This document shows positions 221 to 25,271 of a stretch of DNA of 37,535 nucleotides, piece by piece. Under the pieces are notes generated by a model, which saw only the letters and a list, made by a program, of their open reading frames with translations, did no database searches and was not told where the DNA came from. Origin of the DNA: Chlorokybus atmophyticus (lineage: Eukaryota; Plantae; Mesostigma and Chlorokybus algae); contig RHPI01000671.1 of the NCBI GenBank assembly GCA_009103225.1, forward strand, positions 470,825-508,359, read 5' to 3'. Position numbers and translations under genes: made by a program. The number at the start of each line of letters is the position of its first letter. Position 1 is the stretch's first letter.

Positions 221-934
221 GTGCTGTGCGGGCACGCCTTCTCCTGCTCCTTCTACAACAAGCTGAACCCGCCACTGATGCTGCAGATCGCTCAGTTGTT
301 CCAAGCGCTATGGCTGCGGTGCTGTCTGTCATTCACGGCTAAAACCACTAAACCAATAACTGCCTCTTCCAACAACCTTGCCCCGGAGCGCACATCGCAC
401 ATGCTTGTGAATTACCAGCGATAGAATACTACCCAATACATGCTCAGTACACGTGACACATGCCAGCAGCAGCGAGGTGGCAGCACCCTCACGGACACCA
501 TTGCCAACACCCTCAGCGCTCACTGCCCCCGCCTGCGCAGACTTGGCGTGTCCAACGGCATGCACACGCTCCCGGACCCATGACTCCGAGCCCTTGCGGC
601 CGGCTGCAAACAGGTAGCAAGTTATGCACATTCAATGCACTTCAACTCTTGCATGTCTGCAGCTGAACATGCATCTGCTTATGTGTGGTTGTGCACGTGC
701 GTGTGCGTGCGTGTCTCCGCCTGTGTGCGCGTGCGCGCGTGCCCATATGTGGGCGTATGTGTGTATGCGCACCTGAATGTTGAATGCAAGCAGGTCGATT
801 GCAAGCAAGTGCGAGCACATCACGGAGGCGGGCGTGACCGGCGTGCTGGCCAGCTGCAAGGAGCCAATGAGTCTGGTCATGTGCAGTGCAGCGTGGAGTG
901 GATTTGCATGTTCGACAAAGCTGACAACACGACG
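221..934 (+). pseudogene. Fragments of a cysteine-containing LRR (FBXL-type) gene, 2-3 exons
   Basis: ~472-613 translates STLTDTIANTLSAHCPRLRRLGVSNGMHTLPDP*LRALAAGCKQ and ends CAG|GTAGC. ~775-934 translates LNAS..SKCEHITEAGVTGVLASCKEPMSLVM and ends ACG|GTGAGT. Both fit the LRR_CC repeat pattern. In-frame TGA at 581-583. The putative exon from 221 is weaker. Confidence 0.6.
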
Positions 935-3183: not shown

Positions 3184-3261
3184 ATGGCCGACTCAAAGCT
3201 GTGGGAGTCCATCCTGACGCTATGCGTGGTGGTAAACATGCTCGTGGTCATGGCCCTTGAG
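3184..3261 (+). pseudogene. First exon of an SLC13/DASS (SLT-like) sulfate/anion transporter
   Basis: ATG at 3184 gives MADSKLWESILTLCVVVNMLVVMALE followed by GAG|GTGAGC donor. It resembles the N-terminal TM helix (W..I....V..+VVMA.E) of algal SLT-type permeases, and the matching C-terminus is at 29.3-29.7 kb. Confidence 0.55.
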
Positions 3262-3609
3262 GTGAGCTAGCACGTGGGTGTCGTGATCATATAGTCTGTA
3301 GTGTCGTGCCTGCCATGGTCGAGGGTCACGCCGTCTCGGGCACACTGCAGATGAGCGCCCATGCCGCGGGGCATGCTGGTGCTAAGCGCACTATTGGAGC
3401 AACACAAACAAAGACAACCCCCCAGACATAGGCATAGGCTCGGGGATGAACCTATGTGAGGATCTGATATGTAGTAGAGCTGGTGACGCTCTCCTCCTTA
3501 TTGTACCTATTGTGCTGTAGTACACACAGTCAACAAGCCACCCCCCCTAAGGTCCTGGGGTAGCCTCCTGCTCCAGGACTCAGCTTCAACCGACTGTGTG
3601 GGGGACCGT

Positions 3610-4690
3610 CGATGCGGCAGTCATCGCACCAATACTCTCATAGCGGCACCTTGTCCAATGGAGGGTCAAGGCAGTAACAGTGCATGCCTTGGTTGCAGCC
3701 TTCGCATAACAGCATCACCGGTTCGCGGTCGGCACTGCCACATTTCTCGCAGCGGTTGCTTCGCAGCGGTTGCGGGTGCTGGATCTTGCCGACGCCAGCA
3801 ACACGGGGAAGATGACAGGGCACGCAGTTCACCATGTTGTCCTTCATGTATTCGCCTTGTTGTCTCAGAAGGTCCAGTACCCCTGTGGGATACACTTTTA
3901 ATACCTTATAGACAGCATGCCCGAGGGAGGTGTCGAGGGTGTCGTGTGTGGTTGCCATGCGGTAGACGAAGTCTCCTAGCTGGAAGCGGCGTCCTCGCTT
4001 CTTTAAAAAATTGCTGCGCACACGCTCGTAGCGAAGCGTGTCGTGGTATTAAGCGATGCGCAAGTTGTGGAAGGCCATGAGGACAGTGTGCTCGAACAGC
4101 GCGCTGCGCGCTGTCAGATCATACAGCATCTCGTTGGGGTTGTTAAGATTGTCCACCACGCTGTCGACCTCTTGCTGTGCGTGGGAAGGGAGCAATGGCT
4201 GCCTTCCAAACAGCAAATAGTATGGGCTGTACTCCCACAGTGCTGCCTGCTTGGACAGCCGGTACCCCAGTGCCACCCATGGGAGGTGGTCAACCCATGT
4301 GCTCTTGTCGTAGTCGAGGACAAACATGCGCAAAGCCTTCTTCATACTCTGCACGGTACGCTCAGCGAGACCATTGGCTTGTGGATGGTTGCGTGAAATA
4401 CGGCGATGGTCAATGAAGCATCTGTCCAAGAGCTTGTCAAAGGCTCCTCTGAACTCCGTACGTTGGTCGGTGATGACATCAGCACAGCTGCCGATGCGTC
4501 CGAGTACATGGGAGAGGAAAGCCTGGGCTACTCCCTTGCTGCTCTTGTCGGGCAGGGACACCAGCTCCACCCACTTGAAGAAGTGCTCGATCATGACGAG
4601 GATGTAGCGGCCTCGTGCTGAGGGCAATAAGTGCCCGAGGATGTCCAGTTCCCAGCGGTAGAACAGTCCCAAATGTTGGCAGAACTGCTG
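3610..4690 (-). pseudogene. Element A integrase core plus C-terminal PHD finger
   Basis: FYRWELD...ITDQRTEF...HPQANGLAERTVQ (DDE core), then RCEKCGSADREPVMLLCEGCNQGMHCYCLDPPLDKVPL*EYWCDDC (C4HC3 PHD). Confidence 0.92.
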
Positions 4691-5006
4691 CCAATCAGTC
4701 ACCAGAGAGAGGCTGTGCATACACACTCAATATGCACATAGCACACATCTCTACACATGCATATGCAAGCACACAGCATGCTAGCATGTAACGTGCAAGC
4801 ACACAGCAAGCACAAGCTACAAGTCGCACACAGCAACTGGGAGACCTCAACCCTCGTAAGTGCAAGTCTAGCAGGGCTCAAACTGAGAGTCTAACTCAAT
4901 GGCAGCAATGCCCGTGGCCAATATACCCTAGGCAGCCCCATAGGAGAATACTCCTATCCTACTGTAGATATCTACCCCAAGTATCAAGTCCAGGCTGATA
5001 TCTACA
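4686..5006. mobile_element. ~320-bp non-coding insertion (LTR-like, TG...CA) splitting the element A integrase
   Basis: The integrase zinc-finger region (..VREFVSNCQQCDMVRTSLNTRNTT) stops at 5007 and resumes as ..GLFYRWELD below ~4685. The insert has TG/CA ends and a TGTAGATATC..GATATCTACA inverted repeat at 4963-5006. No TSD found. Confidence 0.5.
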
Positions 5007-6650
5007 GGTGGTGTTGCGCGTGTTGAGGCTCGTGCGGACCATGTCACACTGCTGGCAGTTGCTGACGAACTCGCGCACTTGTTTATGCACCCCATACCAT
5101 CAGTACTAGTACTAGTCCTAATTAGACTGACCGTGCGCTTGACACCGAGGTGTCCGAGCTCGGTGTGAAGGGCAGCGATGATGCCTTCTCGCGCAGCTGG
5201 TGCTGGGACCTCCTTGTCCTCATATTGTATCCGTCGATACAGCTTGTTGTCGCCTCAGCGCTGAGTGCGCTGACCGACGCGGTCCTTCTCGCACGCGCTC
5301 ATGCCTGCTGAAAATTGTCTAGTCTGGAGCAGCGCGAGGGATGGCTTGTTAAGCCAAATGTCCTGTCATGTGTCGGTGGGTGCCAACTCCTTATCGTCCA
5401 CCTCAAGGTCGGCGGCGAGCGCTCCTCTAAGGGGTCAGTGACGGTGACGGTGAGCCCGAAAGAAGGCACGTTCTCGCCTGCTGCTGCCTCAGTGGCCCAG
5501 GTCTTGCGTCCTAAATGTAGCGCAGCGACGGAGAACATGGCCGCTACACCTGGAGGTGCGGCTGCAGAACGCAACTCGTGTCGGGCTCCTGTCGCATCAT
5601 TGGTGCTAAGGTAAGGCCATCTGCGTCCTGGTTGGACAGGCCTACCCGATGCTCCACCTCAAAGTTATACTCCTGCAGCAGCAGTGCCCACCGTGCCAGC
5701 TTGCCTATTAGGTGCTGGTTGGTCATCAGCCACTTCAGTGGTTGGTGGTCAGTAGTCAGCTGAAACTGCCATCGACCAGAAAGGGCGGAAGAAAGAGATG
5801 GCCCATACTGTGGCGAGACACTCCCCCTCGTAGCTGCTGCAATTGGCCTTAGCGCTGTTGTTGCTGCGGTTGGCATACGACACTACGCGCTCCTTCTTGT
5901 TGTCATCGTGCTGCACGAGCACTGCTCCCATGCCGAGCTTGCTCCAATCTGTGTGCAGGATGAATGACCTGTTGTAGTTAGGTCGCTGAAGAGTGGGAGC
6001 TGTGATGAGTCGGAGTTTCAGCTCCTCGAAGGCCTCTTGTCGTGCCTCCTTCCACAGGAACTCCGTGTCCTTCCTTAGCAGCTCGTTGAGTGGCCGCGCG
6101 AGCTTTGCGAAGACCTTGACGAACCGTCTGTAGTAGTTGGCAAGGCCGAGGAAAGCACGCAGTCGCGTGAGATCTGTGGGGGTAGGGATGGCCACCAGTG
6201 CCTCCACCTTGGCTACTGTACATACACACCGTATGGCACAATTATGTGCCCTAGGTAAGGTACCTTGTGGGTAAAGAAGGCACACTTGTCGGGGTGCACC
6301 GTCATCCCTACTTCCTTCAGTCTCTGTAGCACCTCCTCGATGTGCCTGCGATGCTCCTCATTGCTGCGACTGAAGATGAGGATGTCGTCGATATAGCAGC
6401 GTACGAAGTCCAATCCCCTGTGGGCTTTGTCCATGACGCGCTGGAACTTGGCAGGAGCAATCTTCAGTCCGAAGGGCATGACCTTCCACTGGTACAGCTG
6501 CCGGTTGCCCCAGAAGGAGGTCTTGTGCTTGTCCTCCTCCTTGATGGCGATCTGATTGTACCCTTGGCGCATGTCCAGGATGCTGAAGACTGTACAGTCT
6601 CCTACATCATCTAGGATACCTTCTGTAGTAGGCATTTGATACATGTCTTG
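5007..6650 (-). pseudogene. Element A RT (C-terminal part), RNase H and integrase N-terminal HHCC region
   Basis: SILDMRQGYNQI..MPFGL..CYIDDILIFS; LHTDWSKLGMGAVL; LTTDHQPLKWL; LHTELGHLGVKRT..WYGVHKQVREFVSNCQQC, with frameshifts. Confidence 0.93.
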
Positions 6651-6783
6651 TGTCGTGCCTTCCCTCATCGTGGCTCGAACTTGTCGTAAACCACCTTGTC
6701 ATGCATGTCCGTGTGCTATTGTACATGAGACCATGTCATGGTATCTCATGCACTGCCTCTCATCACATGGTAGACACACATAG
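6651..6783. repeat. 133-bp block X extending beyond the 3' LTR of element B (copy 1)
   Basis: Starts TGTCGTGCC directly after the CTTG TSD. Absent next to the 5' LTR. A second, diverged copy lies at 7574-7709. Confidence 0.8.
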
Positions 6784-7571
6784 TGAAAGATGCGTGTCCC
6801 CTTGCAAAAGGTAGGCAAGATGACCACAACTTGACTTGCAATCAGCCGTTCACTCGTGTAGAGCAGTCCAAACTCAATCCTCACTCAATGTACATGCTAG
6901 GGCAGCCCATACGGTGCATGAAAGTCGCAACAGTGACACACACCCCTTCATGCACAGCAACGAACACGTGCACACACACCATACATGCAAGCATGTGCAC
7001 AAGCATCCGCTCAGCCAAGAACCTCTCCCAAAGGTGTTGCTTGCACTCCAGTAGGCCAACTTGCATCCAACCAAACTAGGAAACAAGCTAGCAAAGCCTT
7101 ATATACCACCGTTGAGCCCAAGCCCAACCTACTCTCCAACTACCCTAACTGTCAGTCTGCACCAGCATAGTAACAGTCATGATGGCGTTGATAAGTAACG
7201 GTAGACGGTTAGGAAAGGCTATGCTTATCTAAGCCTATCCTCTTCAAGTACACTTCAAGATGCATCTTGTGACGCCAACCCACGGCCAAACCGCCACTCC
7301 AACTGTAAGTTATGGCTTCTCAAAGTCACAACTCCAAAACAGCTGCGCGGGATACTATAATGACTCAAATATGCTGTCAGCTCGGTATCTGACTGTAGAT
7401 ACGCCTCGAACACACCTCCCTCACGTCCATGAGGACCCAAACATGAGTTCCCAACAAAAACCCAACACATAAACCGTGTAAAATGGCTACGAGAGCCGAA
7501 ATCTCAAGGTCCATCCATGCCGCCAGCCCCGAGGGCACCATGCACATGACACTACATGCTCGCGCATGACA
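6784..7571 (-). repeat. 3' LTR of element B (788 bp)
   Basis: Sense strand TGTCATG...TCTTTCA. Matches 14872-15659 with 9 substitutions counted by eye (7 transitions). Confidence 0.95.
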
Positions 7572-7573
7572 GC

Positions 7574-7724
7574 TGTCGTGCCTTCCCTCATCGTGGCTCG
7601 AACTCGTCGTAAACCACCTTGTTATGCATGTCCGTATGCTATGAGACACCATGAGACCATGTCATGCTATCTCATGCACTGCCTCTCATCACATGGTAGA
7701 CACACATAGTGAAAGATGCGTGTC
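7574..7724. repeat. Second copy of block X plus the terminal 15 bp of the LTR, lying between the PPT and the 3' LTR
   Basis: Similar to 6651-6798 with several substitutions and a small indel. Ends in AGTGAAAGATGCGTGTC (7708-7724), also present at 14870-14886. Confidence 0.85.
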
Positions 7725-7735
7725 GCTACCCCCTG
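7725..7735 (-). other. Polypurine tract candidate of element B
   Basis: Sense CAGGGGGTAGC just after the PHD coding region, analogous to AGGGGGGGTGGCT in element A. Confidence 0.6.
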
Positions 7736-7784
7736 CAGCTGAGCGCCAACGCCCTCGTGCGCCTTCAGCTGACTCACACGCTCA

Positions 7785-8297
7785 TCGCGTAGTCCTCGTA
7801 CACTCTCAACAGTACCATGCTCCATCAGGGATCTCCTCAAGTGGACGAAGGCACTCCATGTGCCAACCGGCAACACATTTGTTGCATAGAAGCATGGTGT
7901 TCCAGCCCTCTGCTCGGCCACACCGTTCACAACGGTGACCCACATCTGGTATTGCCAGAGCCGGATCCACACTGTCATCCACGTTTGGCAGATGGCAAGG
8001 AGCGCAGCTCTTCATGTGCTCCTTGATGGTCCTGGCATCAGCTCCCTCCAACAACAACACACCGTTGTTGAGGTGCTTCTTCACATGACGGATGGTGCGA
8101 CTCGCACTCGTATCCAGCGTGTCCTTGGTCTTTCTCTGCAGATACACAAAGGCACCTGGCTGAAACTTCTGCAGTCTTGGCTTGTAGAAGCCACTCCTCA
8201 CCCTGGCATAGCGCAACGTGTCGCGGTGTTGCGCCACTTGCAAGTTGCCAAGTGCGATTGGCATCACACGCCGAAACAGCTCCGCACACTTTGCCAT
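7785..8297 (-). pseudogene. Element B integrase C-terminal region plus PHD finger
   Basis: RCERCGRAEGWNTMLLCNKCVAGWHMECLRPLEEIPDGAWYC*EC is a C4HC3 PHD with one TGA stop. Confidence 0.92.
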
Positions 8298-8336
8298 CTC
8301 CTTCTCTCACACAGTGGGATCCTCCAAGGCAAGCTC

Positions 8337-10145
8337 CTACTCAACCTGTCTCCGGATTGATGTTGGCAGTATAGGCTCTCTCCCATACAATAAAAAGTAG
8401 GGGCTGTATGAGCTCAACGCAGCCTGCCGCGTTATGCGATAGCCCATCCCCAGCCATGGCAACGCCAAGTCCCAGTCTCTCTTGTTGTGGTTGAGACAGT
8501 ACTTGCGAAGCCCCTTCTTCACCACCTGTACCATTCTCTCAGCAAGCCCATCGGCTTGAGGATGGTCACGGGAAGTCCTTTGATGGTCGATGAAGGCTTG
8601 CGCCAACAAGTCATCGAACTGGCCACGAAACTCGGTGCCTTGGTCAGTGAGAACCTCAGCACAAGCACCGAATCTGCTCAGTACTTGGTCAAGGAAAGCT
8701 TCCGCTACAAGCTTGCTCTCCTTCGATGGCAGCGCCACGACCTCGACCCACTTTGAAAAGTGCTCTATCACCACGAGCACATAGCGGTTGCCTCTCTTGC
8801 TGACTGGTAGATCTCCGGCCAGATCTAGGCTCCACCGATAGAATAGTCCTTGGATAGGCAGAGGGTGCAGCTGTGGGTGCTTGGTATTGAAGCTTGCTCT
8901 CACCCTGTCGCACTCCACACAACTTGCAACAACTCCCGCCACGGTAGACTGCATGCCAGCCCACCAATATGCTGATTGCACGAGTTCAAGTGTCCTCTTG
9001 ACACCAAAGTGGCCCATCTTCTCATGGAGCAGCTCCACAAGTGGCTTCCTCTCATGTGGTTGGGGCACAGTCCTCACACCACCATCCGGCATCAAGCGCA
9101 CAAGGTGGTCTCCCTCCCACCGATAGCGTTGCGCGCGTTGCCACACGCGATCTCGCGTCGCCGTGCTGCAACCAGCTTGGAACAGCCCGGTCTTAAGATG
9201 AGCAAGCACCTGCTCATCCCTCCAAATGTCCTTTGAAGCCTCGGATTCCTCCCCTTCAATGTCATTGACCGTTGGGGCTGGTGCAGCCACCAAAGGCGGC
9301 ATCGCACCATCGTTGTTGCTCTCTCCAGCTGCGTTTACGCGCGTGGATGCGCATGCTTCCACCGAACCCGCCAACACTAGCAAAGAGGCCACACGGTAGG
9401 CCAAAAACCCAGCCATGGGCATGCCATAGTCATGCCTCGCCTCACTCTCATCCAACGATGAAGGGTTCCTACTCAGCCCATCCGCGTCCATGTTGTCAAC
9501 ACCAGCTCGGTGTTCAATCTCAAACTCATACTTCTGCAGTATGAGCGCCCACCTGGCATGCTTCCCTGTGAGCTTGTCATTGGTCATCAACCACCTCAAG
9601 GGCTGATGGTCGGTGATAAGTGTGAAGGGACGGCCATAGAGGAACGGTCTGAAGTGAACAATGGCCCAAACTACTGCCAAACACTCCCCCTCGTAGGAGC
9701 TGTAGTTCGCCTCAGCGTTGTTGTTGCTTCGGCTGCCGTATGCGACTACGTATTCCTTCCCGTTGTCGTCATGTTGACACAACACGGCCCCCATGCCCAA
9801 CCGGCTCCAATTCGTGTGTAGGATGAAGGGACGGTTGTAGTCCGCCCGTCTCAACACCGGCGCGGTGCATAGCTTCTCCTTGAGAAGCTCAAAGGCACGT
9901 TGGCACTCCTCCGACCAGCACCAGGCCTTGTCCTTCTTCAACAAATCATTCAAGGGCTTTGCAATCTTGCTATACCCCTCCACGAACCTCCGATAGTAGT
10001 TCGCCAAGCCAAGAAACGCCCGTAGTCGGCTAATGTCTGTCGGTGCAGGCACTTGCACCAAGGCATCCACCTTTGCTTGCTGCACACGGACGCCATCCGG
10101 CACTATCTCATAGCCGAGATAAGGGATGTGATTAGCTCCGAACAA
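8337..10145 (-). CDS. Element B RT thumb/RNase H/integrase (HHCC + DDE), 602-aa open stretch of the polyprotein
   Basis: FLGLANYYRRF; LITDHQPLRWL; HEKMGHFG..CVEC; RWSLDLAG, TDQGTEF, GLAERMV. Confidence 0.95.
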   Translation of the reverse strand: MFGANHIPYLGYEIVPDGVRVQQAKVDALVQVPAPTDISRLRAFLGLANYYRRFVEGYSKIAKPLNDLLKKDKAWCWSEECQRAFELLKEKLCTAPVLRRADYNRPFILHTNWSRLGMGAVLCQHDDNGKEYVVAYGSRSNNNAEANYSSYEGECLAVVWAIVHFRPFLYGRPFTLITDHQPLRWLMTNDKLTGKHARWALILQKYEFEIEHRAGVDNMDADGLSRNPSSLDESEARHDYGMPMAGFLAYRVASLLVLAGSVEACASTRVNAAGESNNDGAMPPLVAAPAPTVNDIEGEESEASKDIWRDEQVLAHLKTGLFQAGCSTATRDRVWQRAQRYRWEGDHLVRLMPDGGVRTVPQPHERKPLVELLHEKMGHFGVKRTLELVQSAYWWAGMQSTVAGVVASCVECDRVRASFNTKHPQLHPLPIQGLFYRWSLDLAGDLPVSKRGNRYVLVVIEHFSKWVEVVALPSKESKLVAEAFLDQVLSRFGACAEVLTDQGTEFRGQFDDLLAQAFIDHQRTSRDHPQADGLAERMVQVVKKGLRKYCLNHNKRDWDLALPWLGMGYRITRQAALSSYSPYFLLYGREPILPTSIRRQVE

Positions 10146-11061
10146 GCACTTCTCTTGGTGACATCATGCCGCTCTCGCGCACGCGCTCGAACACGAGCTC
10201 CAAGTGTACAAGATGCTCCTCCATCGTGTGGCTAAACACCAATATGTCATCGATGTAGCACCGTGCAAAGGGTAGACCACGAAGCACACGGTCCATCACA
10301 CGCTGGAACTTCACAGGTGCATTCTTCAAGCCGAACGGCATGACCTTCCATTGGTAGAGCTGATCCACTCCCCAAAACGCTGTCTTGCCACGATCCTATG
10401 GCTTGATGGCTAGCTGGTTGAAACCCTGCCTCAAGTCCACGATGGAGAACACCTTTGCACCACCGATGTCATCAAAGATGGCCTCAGGGATAGGCATAGG
10501 GTACCGATCAGCCTTGGTCTTCTCATTCAATGGCCTATAGTCACCACACATCCTCCTTGAGGTCCAGTTTCCCTGTGCATCCTTCTTCAACGGCAACACT
10601 AACGCCGCTGCGAAGTCCGAGGTTGACTCCTCGATGAGTCCAGCCTCCAACAAGTCCGCACACTTCTCTGCCACAAACTCCTTCTCCACCTTGCTCAGCC
10701 GATACTGCCGACGAAAGATGGGCTCAGGAGAGGTCAACTCAATGTCCATTGTGTAGAAGTTGCAGACTCCCAACTCCTTGGTAGAGTAGGCGAAGCAGTC
10801 ACGCTTGCGCGCCAGCAATGCCTCAAGCCACTCACGCTCATGTGGTGTCACATGCTCGCCTATACACCACTCCATGGTCTGGTCGGTGGCCTTCTCCTGC
10901 TTCAAGGCACCATCCACAGCCGCTTTCTTGCCACTTGCAGCTGTCACAGGCGAAAAAGACACCCCCTTACTCTCCTCATGCTGTACATCATGCTCCCACC
11001 CCCTCGACAGAGGCGCAGGCTCCCAACGCGCTTGCTGTCGCATCGGCATAATGCTTGCCAC
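10132..11061 (-). pseudogene. Element B reverse transcriptase (one stop, one frameshift)
   Basis: RMCGDYRPLN..YPMP..VDLRQGFNQL..MPFGLKNAP..CYIDDILVFS. Confidence 0.95.
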
Positions 11062-12010
11062 ACCATGCTATTCTGGTCCATGGCTTGTCCTAGCAGCACT
11101 TGGCGCTGTGGTTTACTTGGTCATGGCGCCGCTGTTGCACGGATAGGAACCCAATCGCACGCTCGCGCTCACCAGCTGTGGGCTCTTCCAACCTGCTGTT
11201 TCGTGAGTCCCACACCAGCCCTGGCCCTCCCTTGCGGAATGCATAAGAGCCTGGGTATGTTACCAATGTCGGCAACGCCGCCATGTCGTGCCCAACCTGG
11301 TTCACCACCTCCTGAGGCGGCCGATCAGCCTTGCTGACCTGTTGTGCTGTGCGCCCATGCTCCAGCACTTGGTTGACTGTCAAACCTTGCGGTCTAGAGT
11401 ACTCTTGCTGCACTGTGCAAAGCAACTCAACCGGCGCAAGGTTTTTCCACTTCACACGCAGCCGATGCGCGCGCGAACCATGCCGTGCGGCATCCATGAC
11501 CAGCTCATGACCTTGCACATGTCTCACCAGCTGATAGTCCTCTCGCACGCGCTTGCGCTTGTCGTCTTCAGCTGGTACGTTCTCAATGATGTACGCCATG
11601 GGCTGCTCTTGGCCTTGCTGAATCATGTTTTGATGACACGCACCAACTCCCAAAACAATGACGAGCGCGTATCCATCAATCCTTTGCCATGACCAGCCTA
11701 TGAATGCCCTTGGCATTCCCACCCCGCTACAAGCAAATCCACATGGCCGATTGCCGCGAGATGATGTGGCCCCACCAAGCAAATGTCTTGCGGCCATGTG
11801 CTTGGAAAGCCCTTCACCGCAGCCTCATGTAGCAGATCTGGATACTTCTTCAACAACATCCTCACATGATGTTGTGCACCTTGTTGTGACGTTGGCAAAG
11901 GGTCCACATAGACGTAGCGCCGCACCTTGATGCCGGCATTCAACGCGGCCGCAAGCCCACTTGCAATGCCACCAAACAGCTCCACCATCACGACACCATC
12001 CTCGGGCACC
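11060..12010 (-). pseudogene. C5 DNA cytosine methyltransferase domain within the element B polyprotein
   Basis: Motif I VELFGGIASG (ELFGGI at 11965-11982); motif IV LLVAGWECQGHS (Cys 11713-11715); motif VI YIIENV (11576-11584); motif VIII GSRAHRLRVKW; IX/X-like EPTAGERERAIGF..LLGQAMDQN. One TAG and 2-3 frameshifts. Confidence 0.9.
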
Positions 12011-12291
12011 TTCCACTCGATGGTGTTGTAGTTGATAGGCGGATGAACAGCTCTCACACCCTTGGGCAGCAACGGCGGCTCCAATGCCATCACATCCTTC
12101 ATCCATGCTTGGCTAACCTTGTCTCGAGCCTCTTGTTGCCGCTGAGCACGGTGTTGTGCAGCCATTTCCAGCTCTTGCGACTGGATTTGAGCCATATAGA
12201 CCAGCTCCGGAGGTCTCCCCTCCTCCATGTGCGTGGAGACACTCTCCCCCTCCTCCACATGGTCATAGTACATGTCGGTGCTGTCACCAAG

Positions 12292-13671
12292 TCATCCCTT
12301 GACTGAACGGCGACTCAAGCACGCCCAAACAGCAGATGCGGATGTTGGAGACCTCTTAACACCCCCTTGCGTGATGCTCAACGGAAAGTAGGCCTTCTCA
12401 CCTCCTCCCACACGCCAACGCGGCCGAAAGAACCCTTGTTCGATCCAATTGTCAACGCCGCCGCCGACGGGGAACAAGAAGTCTTGTCTGAGCAGCACAT
12501 CATACCCCTTCGCATCCGTGATGAGGCATCGAACCTTGAAGGTCGTGGTAGCACCTCCCAACGCAGTCAAGCATATGTCCACCGGCTGCACCGTTATGCC
12601 GCACATGGCCTCTACGGTTCCCGCCGAGGTATTGATCATGACCGGGCATGGCTCCCACTCCTTGGGGCTGAGTCCCATCCCTTTGACAGCTCTAGCACCC
12701 AAAATGACAGGTTGGGCACCTGTATCCACCAAGACAACATCCGGCACGAAGCCATCTAGGCTGATGTGCTCCCCTCGGTTGTCCACCATCACCACATTTG
12801 GCGATATCTTCTCTCTCAAGGCCGGCCGAGTGGCGGGAAGCTGTGCCAACATCCCTCCTACACTCCCCACACCTTCCTCTAGCTTGTCTCCAAGCTGAGT
12901 GAGAGAACTCGATGCCGACGCCGACCCCTCCGACGCCGCCAGCTCCTTGCGCGCAGCCATATGGCCTGTTTGCGCCACCATATCTTCATGAGACTTGCTC
13001 ACATGATCATGAGACGTTGTCGAGGCAGTCCTTGTAGTGTCTAGAGCACTTTGCAACAGCTCCACCACATGTTCCTTGCTGACTCCAAGGCCCTTCAAGC
13101 GAACAAGCGGCTGCCCGACCAGCTCCGCCGCAATGCTCTCCAACGGCGCCGTCAACCCCAAGTTTTCTTCATTGGCTTGAGTTGCGGGCTGTTGGGAAAA
13201 CATCTTGGCACCCTCAAGAAGCTTTACACACATTTGTAGCAGCTCCTCCACTCTCTTGTGCTCACCACCGCCACCGACGCCGACATCATGTTGCGCCGTT
13301 GCCGTAGTGGTCGGCTGCACTTTCGCACCCTCCGAGCGCGAACTCTCTTGCTCCAACGAGGTTGTTGGCAGCAACGTGAATGACATAGGCATGCGTGCAG
13401 CTGGTGCCCGCATCTTATCATGATCCACGCCCTCCTCGCGGACGGGCGCGGCCCTTTCCTCGACCATCCTAGTCGGGGGAGCTGGTGCAGCGTTTTGGCG
13501 TGCCGACGCTCTCGTCGTCGCAACCGCTGCCACCTTAGTGCCTTTGTGAAGCGCACTATACGCGAGGTAGCCTCCGGAGCTGCTTGGCTTATCCTCCGCT
13601 CCTCTCTCGGGCCATTTCCCTCGCTCGAGCATGCTCTTCAACGATGCATACTCCGATTGCATTGCCGCCAA
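12292..13671 (-). CDS. Element B Gag-Pol linker and aspartic protease
   Basis: VVLVDTGAQPVILG..GYDVLLRQDFLFPVG. Same frame as the downstream MTase ORF (11698-12273), separated only by one TGA. Confidence 0.9.
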   Translation of the reverse strand: MAAMQSEYASLKSMLERGKWPERGAEDKPSSSGGYLAYSALHKGTKVAAVATTRASARQNAAPAPPTRMVEERAAPVREEGVDHDKMRAPAARMPMSFTLLPTTSLEQESSRSEGAKVQPTTTATAQHDVGVGGGGEHKRVEELLQMCVKLLEGAKMFSQQPATQANEENLGLTAPLESIAAELVGQPLVRLKGLGVSKEHVVELLQSALDTTRTASTTSHDHVSKSHEDMVAQTGHMAARKELAASEGSASASSSLTQLGDKLEEGVGSVGGMLAQLPATRPALREKISPNVVMVDNRGEHISLDGFVPDVVLVDTGAQPVILGARAVKGMGLSPKEWEPCPVMINTSAGTVEAMCGITVQPVDICLTALGGATTTFKVRCLITDAKGYDVLLRQDFLFPVGGGVDNWIEQGFFRPRWRVGGGEKAYFPLSITQGGVKRSPTSASAVWACLSRRSVKG

Positions 13672-14812
13672 TGCAATTTGTCACTTCCGACATTGATGGC
13701 TCCGCTCTCACACTCGAGTGAGCTCCGACTGCCCCTCCTTGTTGTGGACGCAGCTCCGGATGCTTACTCCAACACTTGGCATCGACATGCCCGCCCTTCT
13801 TGCAATGAGAGCACACCACCTTTTTGCCTTTCCCACAATCCCTTGCAATATGGCCTTGCTCGCCACACGACCAGCATTTGGCACCCGACACACCTTCCAC
13901 AACCGCGTTGTTGGCGTGCTTGAACTCCTTCGGCTTCCCACCAGTTGCCTTGCTTGCCGCCGATGTCGCCGCGGGCTTGGAAGAGCTCTTCTCCTCCGAA
14001 ATCTCAAGCAACTTCAACCCCCGACGCTGCCGGTCAATGTTCTTGAGGTACTCATGCTGAATTTCTGCCGTCTCGGCCATCTTGAAGACATCCGCAAGCG
14101 TGTATGTCCCGAACTCGGACTGAGTGGTCATCATGGTCTCTACCTTCAGCCTCAAGTCCGCCTCTAGTTGTTGAAGGTACACAACCGCCGCGGTCTGATC
14201 CGTCATCACCTTGTAGTCCGTGTCCGTCAAGAGCTTGAGCATGCGCGTATACATCATCCTCGCCGTCTCCCCAACGTTGCGCTTGAAGAAACTCAGCTCA
14301 CGAACCTTGGCGGGTGTTGATTGTGGGTAGGTCTTCCTCAAGAGCGCCTTGAACTCAGTCACGGGCTGCTCCTTCTTCCACTCCGCTTCAAAGGCAGCCG
14401 GTGCGCCGAGCCGCAACGCCCTCTCCCTCACTACCAGCTGCTCCTTGAACTCTCTCCACGTGCCAAGAGCTTCATCCTTGAGGTATAGAGGCAACATCTT
14501 GAAGGCTTTGTGCTCGTCCCACCCCGACTTGTCCCGGTATCCCCATTTGACCATCTCGGAGTCGAAGCAGTCGATGAAGTCCCGTAGGTCCGCCGTGCCA
14601 GGCCTCCCACTGAACTTTGATGTGCTATCCATGCTTGCAGCTGAATCATGCATCTCTCCACCCACGTCCTCGATGTCGGACTCCTCGTCACTTGACAACC
14701 CCACCTCTTCGGCAAGGCCCTCCTCCACTGGAGTGATCCTTCCTTTCGCTCCTCTCTTTGAGGGCGGATTGGGTGGGCGTGACTGCCAGTCCTCTCCAGA
14801 TCTGGTGGGCAT
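13589..14812 (-). CDS. Element B Gag with two CCHC zinc knuckles
   Basis: KFSGRPGTADLRDFIDCFD; CWSCGEQGHIARDC and CSHCKKGGHVDAKC. Confidence 0.92.
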   Translation of the reverse strand: MPTRSGEDWQSRPPNPPSKRGAKGRITPVEEGLAEEVGLSSDEESDIEDVGGEMHDSAASMDSTSKFSGRPGTADLRDFIDCFDSEMVKWGYRDKSGWDEHKAFKMLPLYLKDEALGTWREFKEQLVVRERALRLGAPAAFEAEWKKEQPVTEFKALLRKTYPQSTPAKVRELSFFKRNVGETARMMYTRMLKLLTDTDYKVMTDQTAAVVYLQQLEADLRLKVETMMTTQSEFGTYTLADVFKMAETAEIQHEYLKNIDRQRRGLKLLEISEEKSSSKPAATSAASKATGGKPKEFKHANNAVVEGVSGAKCWSCGEQGHIARDCGKGKKVVCSHCKKGGHVDAKCWSKHPELRPQQGGAVGAHSSVRAEPSMSEVTNCIGGNAIGVCIVEEHARAREMARERSGG

Positions 14813-14858
14813 GAACTCGCCTGCAACTTGCTTCCACCTCGAGCAAACTCAGCTGACG

Positions 14859-14872
14859 GGTTGGATGCAAGT
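14859..14872 (-). promoter_or_regulatory. Primer-binding-site position; candidate self-priming PBS
   Basis: Sense ACTTGCATCCAACC abuts the LTR end (..TTTCA) and is the exact reverse complement of LTR positions 15147-15160. No TGG tRNA-CCA complement is present. Confidence 0.75.
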
Positions 14873-15659
14873 GAAAGATGCGTGTCCCCTTGCAAAAGGT
14901 AGGCAAGATGACCACAACTTGACTTGCAATCAGCCGTTCACTCGTGTAGAGCAGTCCAAACTCAATCCTCACTCAATGTACATGCTAAGGCAGCCCATAC
15001 GGTGCATGAAAGTCGCAACAGTGACACACACCCCTTCATGCACAGCAACGAACACGTGCACACACACTATACATGCAAGCATGTGCACAAGCATCCGCTC
15101 AGCCAAGAACCACTCCCAAAGGTGTTGCTTGCACTCCAGTAGGCCAACTTGCATCCAACCAAACTAGGAAACAAGCTAGCAAAGCCTTATATACCACCGT
15201 TGAGCCCAAGCCCAACCTACTCTCCAACTACCCTAACTGTCAGTCTGCACCAGCATAGTAACAGTCATGATGGCGTTGATAAGTAACGGTAGACGGTTAG
15301 GAAAGGCTATGCTTATCTAAGCCTATCCTCTTCAAGCACACTTCAAGACGCATCTTGTGACGCCAACCCACGGCCAAACCGCCACTCCAACTGTAAGTTA
15401 TGGCTTCTCAAAGTCACAACTCCAAAACAGCTGCGCGGGATACTATAATGACTCAAATATGCTGTCAGCTCGGTATCTGACTGTAGATACGCCTCGAACA
15501 CACCTCCCTCACGTCCATGAGGACCCAAACATGAGTTCCCAACAAAAACCCAACATATAAACCCTGTAAAATGGCTACGAAAGCCGAAATCCCAAGGTCC
15601 ATCCATGCCGCCAGCCCCGAGGGCACCATGCACATGACACTACATGCTCGCGCATGACA
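14872..15659 (-). repeat. 5' LTR of element B (788 bp) with TATA box
   Basis: Near-identical to 6784-7571. Sense TATATAA at 15193-15187. Confidence 0.95.
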
Positions 15660-15990
15660 CTTGCTTGATCTTGTTGTTGAGGGGGCGGTAGTCGACGCAT
15701 ATACGCCGGTCTGTTCAATTGCCTGCTAAATCTTTGTTCAGGGGCATGACGGTCGCGACATAAAGTTCGATGTGGACTCCTCAACCAGGCCTGCATCTAA
15801 CAGAGCCTTGCACTTCTGCTCCACCAAGTCTTCTTCCAACTTGGAGAGTTTGTACTGTCGTCAGAACACCGGTTCGGTGTCCACCAACTTGATGTCCACT
15901 TGGTAGACTGAGCAGCTGCCTAGCTCTTTCACGCTGAAGCTGGACTGGCTCCTCCAGTTGTTAAGGAGAGCCTCGAGTTGTTTTCATGTC
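15660..15990 (-). pseudogene. Element A RT N-terminal part
   Basis: VKELGSCSVYQVDIKLVDTEPVF*RQYKLSKLEEDLVEQKCKALLDAGLVEES..RRICVDYRPLNNKIKQ, which joins DMYQMP at 6650. Confidence 0.9.
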
Positions 15991-16189
15991 TGGCCTATAG
16001 CTAGCGGTCCAATAGCATGGGACCAGGAGGTAGCGTTGGCGACCATTGAAATGTCCTCCATAGTGACTGCTGCCTGCTCCATGTGGGCGATCTCGAGAGC
16101 GGTGTGTGCCGCTTCTCTCGAACGCGATCGGCCCACCCCCTCGCCAAGTGTTCGAGCTGCTGGAAGGCTACGTGGCGGTCCTTGAGAAC

Positions 16190-16960
16190 AAAGCATATAA
16201 ACCTAGGTAAGACACCAGAGTTGGGAGCGCACGGCGCGGTTGACCAGGCTAGTTGCACTGGTAGAAATGCTGATAATCGTGTCGCGTGACCAGTCGTGCT
16301 GTGCGCTCAGGGTCTAGGATAGCGTCGATGGTGAGATCGCGTGGATGATTGCTATGCAAATGCTCAATGTGGTGAAGAGATCCTCCACTGTGGCCAGGTT
16401 GGTCCATTTGGCGCGGACACAATGAGCACGGGATCCATAACGCGCTGCGTTGATTTTGAGAGGATGCCCAAGCAAGGAACACACCTGTCAAATACTGTTG
16501 GCCACGTAAAGACGCTTATCATCCTCGGAGTGCACGTTCTCGATGATGTACCCCAAAGGCCTAGAAATCTGCTTGCTCTGCAGGAGTTTGATGACGCGCT
16601 TCAGCTCCCAGATCAGTTGCGAGCGAGGATCAGAGAGTCCTTAGCCTTTGCCTGCGCTGGAGTGTCCTTCACACTCCCATTCTGCTATCAGCAGGCCGAT
16701 GTTGCCCACGGCCCGGAGGTGATCCGCGTGAATAAACGGATATTATGTGGTAACGCCTTCAGACTGCCTTACAGTGCTAATACTTGCAACTGCTGCGGGG
16801 AGCGCGCGTGTAGGCGGCGCAAGTGGTGGTTGAGGGCAATCTGTACGTGTGAATCAAGGTCACAGTAGAGGTACTTGGTGACCGTCACGCCGGTGTTGAA
16901 GACAGCGGCAAGGCCACTACCTATACCTCCAAACAGCTCCAACACGGTGACGCCTTGTTG
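16190..16960 (-). pseudogene. C5 DNA cytosine methyltransferase domain of element A
   Basis: VTVLELFGGIGSGLAA (ELFGGI at 16922-16939); LLIAEWECEGHSSAGKG*GLSDPRS (Cys 16671-16673); GYIIENV (16533-16541); GSRAHCVRAKWTNL; ALPTLVSY. Confidence 0.88.
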
Positions 16961-17261
16961 GCGGCGAAATACGTGGAACTCCACTACTCCAGTGGCCACC
17001 CAATATTGCTCCTAGACTACAGCTTGGTCCTTGTAAAGAGGGGACCGTGCGGTGAATTGTGGTCTGGTCAGTAGCAGATGTGCGACCACTTGTGCGCGCC
17101 AACGGCGTTCAGATGGTTTTTGTTGGGCCACTTCTTCAGTGGCATCCTCCTGGGGCTCATCATATGGAATATGAGAGTCCTCGTCATGGTTGTGGGGTCT
17201 CTGCCGCTGACTTGACAGTGGTTGTAGAAACTGACTAGTAGGTGACTGTCGCAGCTGACCT

Positions 17262-17720
17262 TTAGTGAGAGCGAGTGCGAGCCACTAGCTCAAGAGGCAG
17301 GTATCCATGAACCTCTCCATCCTCCTCATCCCAATGAGGACGAAACCGTGCCTTCTCTGTCCAGCAGTTCAGCCCCATGCCGACAGGAAAGTTGAAGTCT
17401 TGTCGCAGCAGCAGGTCGCAGGATCCCGCGTCGGTGACCACACACTTCTGTATGATCTCGGTGCTGTGGGAATGGTCCCACCTTGTCAAGTAAATGCAGA
17501 GGGCCTGCTTGGCGATGCCAATCACCTTGTCGCGGTTGCCGGTTGCGGTGTCGAGCACGTATGGGCAGGGCATTAGCTCGGCGCTGGTGATGCCGAGGTC
17601 GCGTGCGAGGTAATGTCTGACAATGACAGACTGGGCTCCAGAGTTCAGCATCACGAGCTTGGGTGGTCGACCATTGATGGTAACATGCTTGCCTGCGTTG
17701 GCGGTGATGGCTGCGTTGGC
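17262..17720 (-). pseudogene. Element A aspartic protease (catalytic D changed to N)
   Basis: LVMLNSGAQSVIV..CPYVLDTATG..SCDLLLRQDFNFPVGMG, collinear with the element B protease. Confidence 0.85.
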
Positions 17721-20131
17721 GTTAATGCGCAGATGCTTGAATCGTCGGTAGCGTCTGCGTGGGGTGACTGCTGCTGCAGTCTCCTCCGGTAGTGTCGAGC
17801 GCAGTGCGGCAAGCGACCCTCGACCGGCTGGGTCTTGAGAACCTCCTTGTCCGCGGCCTGGCCCAAACCGTCTTGGTCTTGGCTGTTGGTGTACTCGCTG
17901 CGGCCTAGGTGCTGGCGGTGCTGCATGTGGTTGCCCGAGTTGTGGCGCAGGGGGATTGCGCATTTGTGTGGCCGGGCAATACCTGGCGGCGTGGCCAGTA
18001 GTTGTGGGGGAAACCCTGGAGGACGGGGTATCTGTAGGCCCGCCTCCCGTGCGGCCTGTTCTTCCACATAAGTCCAGCGTACAGCATGCGCCGCCTCCCG
18101 GACCGGTGTACCTTTTGATGTGGCTGTTGGATTGTTGACCACAATACCCCAGCGATGGTTCTGAGGCATGGGCTGAAGATACACCGCGCGCAAGAGTCGC
18201 GCTCTTATGTCATGGGTGATGGCGGGAACCCTTGGGATCCCTGCCATGTAGGCATCCCATCTGCCATTGACCACCCCCAGTTCTAGCACCGTCGTTGCTC
18301 GTGCACGCACAGTAAGGTAGATCTCTGGCTATTGAACATGCTACTCATAAGCAGCTGCGATGCGTCTGTGTTGTCGCGCCGCTTCCACTCCTGGCAACCT
18401 CAGTATGGCCTCTTAAGCTCCTTCCAAGGTGTTGGTGGCTGCCGAGGCCACCTCGTCATAGGCTTGCCGTAGCGAGCGAAGCAAAGCGTCCAGCCATAAC
18501 AATCGAGTGCCAAATGCGAACAAAGGGACTACGGGGTGATTGGTGACTAGCCAAGTCACTAGTCTCGCTCGCGCTGCATTGCCACCTTCTCGCATCCCCA
18601 TCATCTGACTCAGGCCGATGCCTTCTTGTCGATGTAGCATGGTTGCTTGTCGCAACAGGGCAGTGCGAACTTGCTGTTCATCAACTAGGCCTGCTTCATC
18701 CCGTTGTGTACACCCTTGTGGTGTAAGGTAGCCTCTCCCTAAATCTCGTGGACCGTCAGGCAGATCTTCCACCAAGGTGGGTAGCAACGGGGCGATCACC
18801 CCCTTGGTTTGTTGGGCTTGCGTCCTCACCTGGTCAATGTCGGTCTCGACGGCGAGAGGTGTCGTGCTGGACGATGGGCCAGCGATTATTGGTTGGGCAA
18901 CGGAAGCGCGAGCAGTGGCAAGGGCTTGCGCTCGTGCATTGATAGCTGCAGTTTAATCCTATCTTGAGGTGAACACTTGTTCCACAGCGGCGTAGCGCTC
19001 GTGAAGCCGAGGAGTAGTGAGGGTCCTCAGTACTTCGTCGGTACTCAAAGGCATGTCAGCTGCATCGCTGATGTGCTGCTGTACATTGAGTTGCTGGTCT
19101 CGATACGTGTCCAGCGGACTTGGCTCGAAAGGCTCGTGACGGGCTTGTGTGGGCTGCCGTGGCGCGGTTTGCATGTTGTCATGCAGAGTCCAGCTGCATG
19201 GCCAACTCTAGCACAACAGGTGTTCTTACCACAAAGATGCGGTTTTGCATGGGAGGTGCCGTGCCGGTGAGGATTCTCCAATTGCCGCCGAGTCTGCTCT
19301 GGCAGGGTGTAACATTTAGGCCGGGGGAAAACGCAATCATTGCGTTTAGTACGCGTGGTGCGCTCTCCTCCTCTTCCAAAAGCAATGGTAGTGGGCTGCT
19401 CCACGCATGATGGTTTCCCATGCGCGCTCAGCTTGCTGACCTCGCGGGACAGCCTGAGTGGCGTCGAGGGCGGGCAACGTAGCTGCGCGCGTCGCTGCAG
19501 TGGCAGCGGACTCGACGATGGCACTGGCAGTGGTTGCGATAGTGCCGGTCAGTGGCGCGAGAGTGGTCTCAATGTTCGCTGACATAGGTGCTTCTGCAGC
19601 TGAGCTGGAGCGGGACATGTGCGATGCACTGCTGCAGAGTCGAAAACAGCATTAGCTGTCGCCATCGTGCTCACTAGTGTTGGCGTCAAGGTGCCCACTG
19701 GTGTACCAACTTCTGGTGCACCTGAAGTAGTCGCTGTTGACGCTGACGAAGTGGAAGTCGTAGCCAGTGTGGCTGTTGCTGCTAATGCAACAGCCACACC
19801 ACTAGTGGCTTCGGTAGAGGTAGCTGCTGACCATGTTGCAGCTTCCCCTCGTGCTCGTCGGGATGGTTGAATCCGTGACGGAGTGTTGATGTCTCTCATG
19901 CGCTTCGGAGCCATTAGGGGCCATCGGGCGAGTAGCAGGCGCGGTAGTTCTGCTCCTTGTCTTCCTCCAAGCGCGCCATGAGGGCAGCAATATGGTCATC
20001 AGCTGGCGGGTTGGCTGAAGCCTTGACAGCAACAGCAGCAGCGCGTGGACCCCCCCTCCTCCTTCAAGTCCCTTGCGCTGAGGAGTACGATTCTTCCCCC
20101 TGTAGCCTTGCTCTTCTTTGCAAGCATTGGC

Positions 20132-20299
20132 GTAGTAGTTGTTGTTATTGTTATGGCCTCCGGTGTGGTTGCTATTGTAGCCACCAAAATTGCCGTTGTG
20201 GCCTCTAGTGTTGTTGCTGTTGTAGCCACCAGAGTTGTTGCCGTTGTGGCCTCCAGTGTTATTGCTGTTGTAGCCACCAGAGTTGTTGCTGTAGTTGGC
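20132..20299 (-). repeat. Degenerate 24/48-bp tandem repeat encoding an N/G/Y-rich tract in the element A Gag frame
   Basis: After FPEL* the Gag frame reads SANYSNNSGGYNSNNTGGHNGNNSGGYNSNNTRGHNGNFGGYNSNHTGGHNNNNNYY. Confidence 0.8.
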
Positions 20300-20302
20300 A
20301 GA

Positions 20303-25241: not shown

Positions 25242-25271
<30 letters not shown>
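25053..25271. other. Poly-G-flanked N gap inside the element C RT (assembly gap/artefact)
   Basis: G run 25053-25072, N 25073-25241, G run 25242-25271, between TTLD and YHQIRI. Confidence 0.9.

Follow-up and report, generated by a model that had tools for sequence, protein, structure and literature searches.

A decayed retrotransposon nested in an older relative

An earlier note on this DNA had placed a C5 methyltransferase, a PHD-tipped integrase and a primer-binding site complementary to the element's own predicted 5' end within a single element, raising the question of whether these three features truly form one mobile unit and, if so, whether they are traits of a family or accidents of one copy. 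The window, by which we mean the whole 37,535-nucleotide stretch of Chlorokybus atmophyticus DNA that was analysed, is a pile of nested, decayed elements. The element in question lies on its minus strand, as do all the features described below except where stated, and runs from 15659 to 6651, exactly the span given previously. Its termini start with TGTCATG and end with CACGACA (TGTC...GACA), and a 4-bp target-site duplication, CAAG, can be read directly on both flanks, upstream at 15663-15660 and downstream at 6650-6647. The insertion target was the reverse transcriptase (RT) gene of an older related element, whose frame continues across the insertion, reading RICVDYRPLNNKIKQ up to it and DMYQMPTTEG beyond it.

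Between these ends, the domain order is gag, protease, DNMT3-like methyltransferase, RT, RNase H, integrase and PHD finger. The gag ORF, which contains a CCHC zinc knuckle (13589-14812), is parted by a one-base frame break from an ORF encoding a linker and the aspartic protease (12292-13671), and the RT, RNase H and integrase, the latter with its zinc-binding region and rve core, occupy 8337-10863, a region in which the frame breaks at 10163 and a premature stop falls at 10398-10396. Matches to Pfam RT_RNaseH, Integrase_H2C2 and rve, with the order established by tblastn, reveal the protease, RT, RNase H and integrase arrangement of Ty3/Gypsy pol, and the best solved-structure match for the RT-integrase region of an intact relative is Ty3 (E 1e-105). 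The window element also shares with the Gypsy-DNMT3 family a DNMT3-type domain inside a Gypsy polyprotein, which is broken in this copy, and DIRS-like split repeats. Taken as a whole, including what we propose below about priming, repeat layout and accessory domains, the best explanation, in which we have good if incomplete confidence, is that a streptophyte Gypsy-DNMT3 retrotransposon, of the Ty3/Gypsy type, left a now decayed copy at 6651-15659.

The window copy itself is dead; its genes are broken and none of the steps proposed below is possible for it. We found seven premature stops (12294-12292, 11700-11698, 11123-11121, 10398-10396, 8339-8337, 8309-8307 and 7808-7806) and five frame breaks (near 13675, 11628, 11139, 11057-11061 and 10163), on all of which the earlier note was silent. 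Two public runs yielded contigs that differ in length at four of these frame breaks and have additional letters at the remaining one, which shows the damage to be private to the window copy. On its own this copy is ordinary debris, and its value lies in comparison with its relatives.

A DNMT3-like methyltransferase and a PHD finger recur together in relatives

The methyltransferase domain (11058-12000) sits between protease and RT, where it is spread over three frames with stops at 11700-11698 and 11123-11121, and is matched by an intact relative in tblastn at E 2e-102. Motifs I, IV, VI and IX are recognisable in the window copy; its fragments fall short of Pfam PF00145 at a threshold of E 0.01, which the intact relative L001 passes at 1.5e-11. 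A profile of the family's methyltransferases finds DNMT3C/3A/3B as its best matches (E about 1e-21), with DRM2, bacterial enzymes and DNMT2 ranking below them. Motif IV of the window copy reads GWECQGHS, such that in this lineage a glutamate replaces the proline before the catalytic cysteine (GWECQ, against a near-universal PCQ), a substitution also common to uninterrupted relative polyproteins of about 2350 amino acids; the cysteine itself and the ENV of motif VI are present.

The PHD finger at the integrase C-terminus (7782-7931) matches Pfam PF00628 at 4.9e-6 in the window and at 4.8e-10 in L001. It follows the Cys4-His-Cys3 zinc-binding pattern, of which the window copy loses the last cysteine to a stop two codons before it (7808-7806). 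The nearest solved PHD fingers are those of CHD4, DPF3, PHF12, KDM5, PHF21A, AIRE and UHRF1, which read unmodified H3. The finger therefore appears most like readers of unmodified histone H3 tails, a specificity predicted by similarity alone, and it may steer integration.

Intact relatives carry PF00145 and PF00628 together, either in a single polyprotein or across two in-frame ORFs. Those with matching order include L001/L002, P0147, P0148, P0153 and P0155, and matches extend to many Marchantia, Calypogeia and Sphagnum models and to 73 metagenome loci. The Klebsormidium locus L082 (KFL_000540020/30) has the methyltransferase, RT-integrase, PHD finger, B-A-B repeats and palindrome. Relatives from liverworts and Klebsormidium, and those on many metagenome contigs, thus share the pairing of methyltransferase with PHD finger. 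All three features are present at 6651-15659 as had been claimed, and with the leader pairing described below also kept in relatives, they constitute one mobile unit and family traits rather than accidents.

Split repeats meet at a shared palindrome

The two identical long terminal repeats that would flank the genes of a Ty3/Gypsy element are absent from the window element, and the label of LTR element originally given to it does not hold in its plain form. Its repeats are split in the layout A-genes-B-A-B, such that A begins at the left end and B finishes at the right end. The 5' repeat A1 (14870-15659, 790 bp), which contains the promoter, the predicted RNA start and U5, has 98.9% identity to A2 (6782-7571, 790 bp; nine differences). 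B1 spans 7574-7707, and B2, the terminal repeat ending in GACA, spans 6651-6781. At the B1/A2 junction lies a palindrome, GACAGCTGTC (7568-7577, no strand assigned), which comprises two integrase-type ends head to tail and is found in identical form in L005, L006, L007, L016 and L049 as well as in Klebsormidium L004, L082 and L083. Directly before B1 lie 17 nt (7708-7724) that duplicate the end of repeat A, and the G-run GCAGGGGG (7729-7736), to which relatives have a counterpart at the matching place, is a likely polypurine tract.

We propose that reverse transcription would yield a B-A-genes-B-A product, that its ends would be joined with one to four primer-site bases left at the A/B joint, and that integrase would then open the palindromic B/A junction to produce the permuted inserted form. 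This circle-and-reopen step is a model, one that does not account for the 17 nt of A-end sequence in front of B1.

A covarying leader pairing suggests self-priming

In the leader, GGTTGGATGCAAGT (15160-15147) pairs with ACTTGCATCCAACC (14872-14859) over 14 nt with zero mismatches, bearing out the proposed complementarity between primer-binding site and predicted 5' end, which is perfect and extends to 14 rather than 11 nt. The left arm, the predicted first transcript bases and putative self-primer, begins 33 nt downstream of a TATATAA box (15187-15193), and the right arm, the predicted primer-binding site, overlaps the last 3 nt of A1. The minimum-energy fold is closed by the helix of these two arms, and none of 3000 shuffled repeats gave a complement of the observed length to the boundary window in each of the three cases tested, the window included.

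Perfect arms of 14 nt in the window are joined by arms of 15 nt in L006, 24 nt in L007, 14 nt in L003, 17 nt in a moss-metagenome family (six loci), 17 nt in L055 and 14 nt in L009. These seven cases all differ in sequence, so that the pairing survives complete sequence change; conservation, on which the earlier note had made its case depend, is seen in sequence-distinct relatives. In three lineages a TATA box precedes the left arm by 26-33 nt. In three cases the boundary of the 5' repeat is known; there the right arm starts 0-3 nt ahead of the repeat's end and overlaps it by 3 nt (window), 4 nt (L007) or at most 1 nt (L049), adjoining the repeat as does the primer-binding site of Tf1-type elements. 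No arm examined starts with TGG, and searching the window and 27 loci turned up no tRNA genes. Of the decayed moss-metagenome loci, about half lack a perfect arm of at least 12 nt. The three Klebsormidium loci are without 5' ends, so that the comparison covers relatives other than the published family. Pairs of at least 12 nt also occur in coding control windows (5 in 83 kb, against 7 in 45 kb of upstream sequence, or about 2.6 times rarer per base), and therefore only long, correctly placed pairs carry weight.

The persistence of the pairing in relatives with entirely different sequences speaks for self-priming of the Tf1 kind as a clade-wide trait, and the clade probably primes from its own RNA end with no tRNA. 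The transcript would start at the left arm, a position predicted solely from TATA spacing; its first bases would fold back onto the primer-binding site, as in fission-yeast Tf1, and RNase H would free a 3' end from which minus-strand DNA could be primed without need for a tRNA.

Alternative readings

In a window full of nested, decayed elements, the methyltransferase or the PHD finger might come from a different inserted sequence, or the stretch might be mis-assembled. Yet a single pair of ends with a single 4-bp duplication encloses all the parts, other loci show the identical domain order within one uninterrupted ORF, and the stretch is also represented in contigs of two public runs, leaving such an artefact with a negligible chance; the intact relatives have effectively refuted it already. 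A weightier alternative accepts the pairing as real but casts it as an RNA structure serving packaging, dimerisation, translation control or strand transfer, with a host tRNA or tRNA fragment priming at or beside the site. The occurrence of 12-13 nt pairs in control regions, a second conserved stem in the leader of the moss-metagenome family, which suggests that leaders of the clade are structured in general, and the reliance of the transcript start on TATA spacing all lend it some plausibility. We nonetheless judge it unlikely, given that the right arm lies at the repeat boundary, the place required of a primer site, in the window, L007 and L049; that its sequence differs in each lineage and always matches that lineage's own repeat, as a conserved tRNA could not explain; that arms beginning with TGG number zero; and that, in three lineages, the position of the TATA box puts the left arm where transcription would be expected to begin.

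Self-priming thus remains our preferred account of the leader, and a separate doubt attaches to the methyltransferase, whose target may be the newly made DNA or the region around it. It could instead leave the element's cDNA unmethylated, either as a catalytically weak or inactive module retained for structural or RNA-directed purposes or by working on host chromatin once the element has integrated, and we give this a minority but substantial chance of being correct. The Klebsormidium Gypsy enzyme yielded no detectable methylation in yeast, a result its authors deemed inconclusive (PMC5890265), and the window's lineage has GWECQ in place of PCQ. Against this, the catalytic cysteine, ENV motif and C-terminal motifs are nearly invariant across the family, and the domain has been retained in long uninterrupted ORFs over deep divergence. 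Three pairs of relatives give the methyltransferase a dN/dS of 0.10-0.12, figures that come from outside the window's own lineage, where synonymous change is saturated; the relaxed selection raised earlier as a potential objection is not apparent in those relatives, and a Ka/Ks below 0.2 was published for the Klebsormidium family (de Mendoza 2018, PMC5890265). The earlier expectation that the enzyme would be made in equal amount to RT and integrase suits the single-ORF lineage but not a sister lineage, in which an in-frame TAG separates the upstream methyltransferase from RT-integrase.

These comparisons recast the published Gypsy-DNMT3 family as a broad clade that unites a methylation writer and a PHD reader with permuted repeats and a covarying self-priming signature. 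A bolder and distinctly tentative proposal, which we think more likely wrong than right, is that Klebsormidium, Chlorokybus, liverworts and mosses harbor a deep streptophyte Gypsy lineage with its own style of replication, wherein reverse transcription would be self-primed, a joined-end intermediate would be reopened by a DDE integrase at an internal palindrome to give the permuted repeats, and DNMT3 with an unmodified-H3-type PHD finger would mimic host ADD-DNMT3 targeting, such that new copies are placed in, or marked as, silent chromatin. If the priming and joined-end intermediate are real, the clade would offer a natural system for a retroviral-type integrase working from an internal site, as well as a test bed for whether a transposon methyltransferase marks its own DNA before or at insertion, a question since 2018.

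Comparison with known systems

A DNMT3 domain inside Gypsy pol, DIRS-like repeats and the idea of self-methylated cDNA were all published in 2018 for Klebsormidium (de Mendoza 2018, PMC5890265), and both PHD fingers and self-priming have been described separately for other retrotransposons. Self-priming is a trait that we did not find in the literature on the Gypsy-DNMT3 family; the text of de Mendoza 2018 (PMC5890265) makes no mention of a PHD finger or primer site. KnitGypsy-Dnmt3 of Klebsormidium nitens (PMC5890265) shares with the window element a DNMT3-type domain in Ty3/Gypsy pol, a DDE integrase and DIRS-type repeats, and the Klebsormidium loci that we fetched also have the PHD finger, B-A-B block and GACAGCTGTC junction. 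The copies are nonetheless distant, with RT-integrase identity of 47-54%, no DNA similarity and FPCQ rather than GWECQ in motif IV.

Tf1 of Schizosaccharomyces pombe, sushi and Tcn1 likewise have a complement of their own first RNA bases beside the 5' repeat and no tRNA-type site, the transcript start being predicted in our case. The likeness is one of priming signature alone: the Tf1 arm is 11 nt, compared with 14-24 nt in this clade, and those elements bear a chromodomain where this clade has a PHD finger, plus a methyltransferase and split repeats. Among plants, self-priming was predicted for the Tcn1 and TAR lineages only (Neumann 2019). REM1 of Chlamydomonas and other PHD retrotransposons carry a PHD reader on the integrase or RT protein as a presumed integration guide (as cited in PMC6673714; Grau-Bove 2022 preprint), and in the citations through which we compare them, rather than their sequences, no methyltransferase is reported for REM1-type elements (Perez-Alegre 2005, Kapitonov and Jurka 2003, in PMC6673714). 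DIRS elements of the PAT/Ngaro type share the A1-genes-B1-A2-B2 order with the window element but use a tyrosine recombinase and leave no target duplication, whereas the window element encodes a DDE integrase, has TG...CA-type ends and is flanked by a 4-bp duplication. Finally, EpiLTRs (2026 preprint, 10.64898/2026.05.21.726589) are LTR retrotransposons that also join DNA methyltransferase domains with a chromatin reader; found in Euglena and other protists, they combine an adenine methyltransferase and a DNMT4-like enzyme with a chromodomain and represent an independent acquisition (10.64898/2026.05.21.726589).

Architecture of the mobile unit

The decayed Ty3/Gypsy-DNMT3 copy lies on the minus strand at 6651-15659, and this span, proposed in the earlier note, corresponds to the exact mobile unit, as indicated by its termini (TGTCATG at the start and CACGACA at the end), a 4-base target duplication (CAAG) and flanks that on both sides belong to a single RT gene from another, related element (RICVDYRPLNNKIKQ followed by DMYQMPTTEG), the frame of which runs across them. 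Self-comparison of the window yielded two repeat pairs on the minus strand, pair A (A1 at 14870-15659 and A2 at 6782-7571; 790 bp, 98.9% identical with 9 differences) and a second, shorter pair (6651-6798 and 7574-7724) that contains B1 and B2. In 5' to 3' order on this strand, the element starts with A1 (15659-14870) and continues with the gene region, 17 nt that copy the A end (7724-7708), B1 (7707-7574), the dinucleotide GC, A2 (7571-6782) and, as its final segment, B2 (6781-6651). B1 and A2 meet in the palindrome GACAGCTGTC (7568-7577). Because B2 is part of the mobile unit, this is a split-repeat element rather than a plain LTR element. A reading of the element as a nesting artefact was considered and rejected.

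The 17 nt before B1, together with the G-run that precedes them, duplicate the end of repeat A (7708-7736 versus 14870-14894; GCAAGGGG...CACT versus GCAGGGGGTAGC...CACT). This extra copy, which is absent from the related loci L007 and L049 and from the Klebsormidium locus L083, may stem from gene conversion between two A|B-type joints. CpG depletion of the element is mild (0.73) and that of its surroundings is alike, making this measure uninformative.

Coding content and decay

Pfam matches in the element comprise a CCHC knuckle in gag, an aspartic protease, RT-RNase H, the zinc and core domains of the integrase and a PHD finger. At E 0.01, Pfam returned nothing on the two methyltransferase fragments, and the methyltransferase was instead shown by tblastn and alignment with relatives; tblastn with an intact relative located it after the protease and ahead of RT (E 2e-102), and also gave the frame path. 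Along this path we found seven premature stops (12294-12292, 11700-11698, 11123-11121, 10398-10396, 8339-8337, 8309-8307 and 7808-7806), the last of which removes the final zinc ligand of the PHD finger, and frame breaks near 13675, 11628, 11139, 11057-11061 and 10163. Copies in the contigs of two public runs, a comparison that covered contigs only, are mostly 90-99% alike. At four of the five frame breaks they differ in length, and at the fifth they carry additional letters, indicating that the damage is private to the window's copy. Judging from these sequences, the family probably possessed one long ORF.

Relatives in algae, land plants and metagenomes

Querying with the window's integrase ORF, whose closest protein is 58% identical, returned hundreds of RT-RNase H-integrase proteins, many of them with PF00628, from Klebsormidium, Closterium, Calypogeia, Riccia and metagenomes; at the DNA level, the element has no similarity to Klebsormidium. 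An intact relative was found on the NCBI contig pair L001/L002, where a 1451-aa ORF encodes gag, protease and PF00145 (E 1.5e-11) and a 1039-aa ORF encodes RT, RNase H, integrase and PHD. Its methyltransferase domain in turn retrieved polyproteins of ~2350 aa that carry protease, PF00145, RT, RNase H and integrase on a single chain, one of which (P0148) possesses PF00628 as well, in addition to many Marchantia gene models. A profile search added Sphagnum, Calypogeia, Closterium and the Klebsormidium protein KFL_000540020, and a metagenome scan with a 7-row alignment as the query found 73 loci. The best solved-structure match of the RT-integrase region is Ty3 (1e-105). The Klebsormidium locus L082 holds a methyltransferase, RT-integrase, a PHD finger, a B-A-B block and the palindrome, and L004 and L083, also from Klebsormidium, share its 3' end; the published Klebsormidium family and the window's element therefore have their whole design in common.

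The metagenome contig L006 (name ending _c) is a head-to-tail array over 1-18357 with an 8262-bp period, in which the units, each comprising the genes plus one B-A, are 99.8% identical; either the assembler collapsed the repeats, or the element exists here in tandem or as a circle. In L007 (8590-19200), an intact 2352-aa copy is bordered on either side by additional incomplete A and B units, and an inverted piece of A is present as well; family members may have inserted into one another here, or the repeat arrays may be longer.

Methyltransferase domain (METHYLTRANSFERASE) and its dosage

Motifs I, IV and VI and the C-terminal ERERAMGF and LGQAMD blocks of the methyltransferase are near-invariant across the family, the profile of which finds DNMT3C, DNMT3A and DNMT3B as its best solved structures (~1e-21). 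Motif IV of the window's element reads GWECQGHS, with Glu replacing the Pro that precedes the catalytic Cys in almost all C5 enzymes, whereas Klebsormidium has FPCQ where the window's element has GWECQ. The same replacement occurs in L003, L006, L007, L012 and L039, uninterrupted 2350-aa ORFs included, and is thus a trait of this ECQ lineage. Three pairs of PCQ-type relatives gave dN/dS values of 0.10-0.12; synonymous change has reached saturation in the ECQ lineage. For the Klebsormidium family, a Ka/Ks below 0.2 has been reported along with the proposal that the retrotranscribed copy gets methylated (de Mendoza 2018, PMC5890265). A yeast assay of the Klebsormidium Gypsy enzyme detected no activity, a result that its authors deem inconclusive (PMC5890265), and methylation by the family consequently stays putative.

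In PCQ-type relatives (L001/L002, L021, L022 and L009), the gag-protease-methyltransferase ORF terminates at a conserved in-frame TAG at the methyltransferase/RT boundary (L001 5408-5410, L002 4837-4839, L021 5083-5085, L022 4661-4663 and L009 4509-4511), which is followed by CAA CCA, CAG TTA or CAA TCA. Beyond the TAG, RT-integrase-PHD resumes in the same frame for ~1045 codons in the four contigs that reach far enough, that is, all but L009. This context matches UAG-CAR-YYA, the leaky-stop motif of plant viruses, and the TAG of the PCQ-type sub-lineage looks like a programmed read-through site. These relatives would produce their methyltransferase alongside Gag and at a higher level than RT and integrase. 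The ECQ lineage (L006 and L007) has a single ORF for everything, as, we infer, does the window's family. Production of methyltransferase in an amount equal to RT and integrase, as proposed in the earlier note, would hold in the ECQ lineage only, with its one ORF, and not in PCQ-type relatives, where the TAG separates methyltransferase from RT-integrase.

PHD finger

The closest matches to the intact relative's PHD finger are the PHD fingers of CHD4, DPF3, PHF12, KDM5A/B, PHF21A, AIRE and UHRF1. These fingers read the unmodified H3 tail, a signal also used by the ADD domain of host DNMT3 enzymes. As a lead from sequence likeness, the PHD finger of the element is a candidate reader of the unmodified H3 tail.

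Leader pairing and putative self-priming

Within the leader, GGTTGGATGCAAGT (15160-15147; left arm) is the perfect complement of ACTTGCATCCAACC (14872-14859; right arm and putative primer-binding site). The complementarity to the element's own predicted 5' end claimed for this site is present, and at 14 nt it is 3 nt longer than had been stated, the additional bases being the last of A1. A TATA box, TATATAA, precedes the left arm by 33 nt. Perfect arms are also found in L006 (15 nt, with the TATA box TATAAATA 31 nt upstream of the left arm) and, with no TATA box seen, in L007 (24 nt), L055 (17 nt), L003 and L009 (14 nt each); a moss-metagenome family (L016, L049, L051, L052, L056 and L057) has arms of 17 nt, or 24 nt with G-U pairs, and TATAAAG ~26 nt upstream. 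Arm sequences are unrelated from lineage to lineage, each pairing with its own repeat, and between L003 and L006 the outer bases are common while the middle differs on both sides. In these relatives the pairing at the primer site persists although its sequence does not. Scoring covered loci outside Klebsormidium, whose three loci are without a 5' end.

Where boundaries are known (the window, L007 and L049), the right arm starts 0-3 nt ahead of the point where the 5' repeat ends. In each of three cases, none of 3000 repeat shuffles gave a complement to the boundary window as long as that observed. Pairs of 12-13 nt are present in coding controls too, and roughly one in two decayed moss-metagenome loci has no perfect arm. 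In the predicted leader, the minimum-energy structure is closed by the arm helix, which is its only informative part, as the stability of the whole-leader fold is not above that of shuffles (z -0.98). No tRNA genes were found in the window or in 27 loci. With the transcript start predicted, the leader pairing is a sequence signature of putative Tf1-type self-priming. Downstream of the primer-site pairing, leaders of the moss-metagenome family (L016, L025, L026, L056 and L057) also conserve another stem, in which GCTCTCTGGTTGTGT pairs with GTGTAGCTAGAGAGC over a distance of 216 nt.

A proposed route to the inserted form

A G-run directly precedes B in L007, L049 and Klebsormidium L083, and the primer site follows A, so ordinary reverse transcription should yield B-A-genes-B-A. 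The inserted form is A-genes-B-A-B, the ends of which, TGTC and GACA, lie head to tail inside the internal palindrome, and the A|B joint retains 1-4 primer-site bases (ACT in the window, ACTT in L007 and A in L049). We propose that the reverse transcription product would form a joined-end intermediate, which integrase would reopen at the B|A palindrome. Both the permuted ends and the retained primer-site bases are consistent with such an intermediate; the 17-nt A-end copy before B1 of the window's element is left unexplained by it.

Interrupted host element and remainder of the window

Element A, the one interrupted by the insertion (minus strand, 3614-6650 and 15660-20929), has decayed as well. 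It too is of the Gypsy type and carries gag, protease, a methyltransferase (16954-16365) whose motif IV reads EWECEG, RT, integrase and a PHD finger. Neither a repeat pair nor a palindrome was found in it, and its complements reach just 11-12 nt, which is chance level. An RT fragment of a more distant Gypsy-type element, with 32-40% identity to the relative's RT, lies at 24932-26218 on the plus strand. The window is mostly nested transposon debris, in which no host gene was recognised.

Comparison with described elements

The central observation of the earlier note, a methyltransferase, a PHD-bearing integrase and a self-complementary primer site in a single element, is confirmed, and the interpretation built on it is partly supported. 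Our literature search found no paper stating this three-part combination or self-priming of the Gypsy-DNMT3 family. PHD fingers in retrotransposons were reported by Kapitonov and Jurka 2003 and Perez-Alegre 2005, as cited in later work, and their commonness is documented by Grau-Bove et al. A 2026 preprint (10.64898/2026.05.21.726589) names the streptophyte 'Gypsy-DNMT3' and, in other LTR elements, describes two methyltransferases united with a chromodomain. The Dnmt3-carrying Gypsy element of Klebsormidium has repeats arranged like those of DIRS elements, in a text that mentions neither PHD finger nor primer site (de Mendoza 2018, PMC5890265). The window's element is a dead new member of this published kind, to which the useful addition is covariation evidence that the clade may prime itself.
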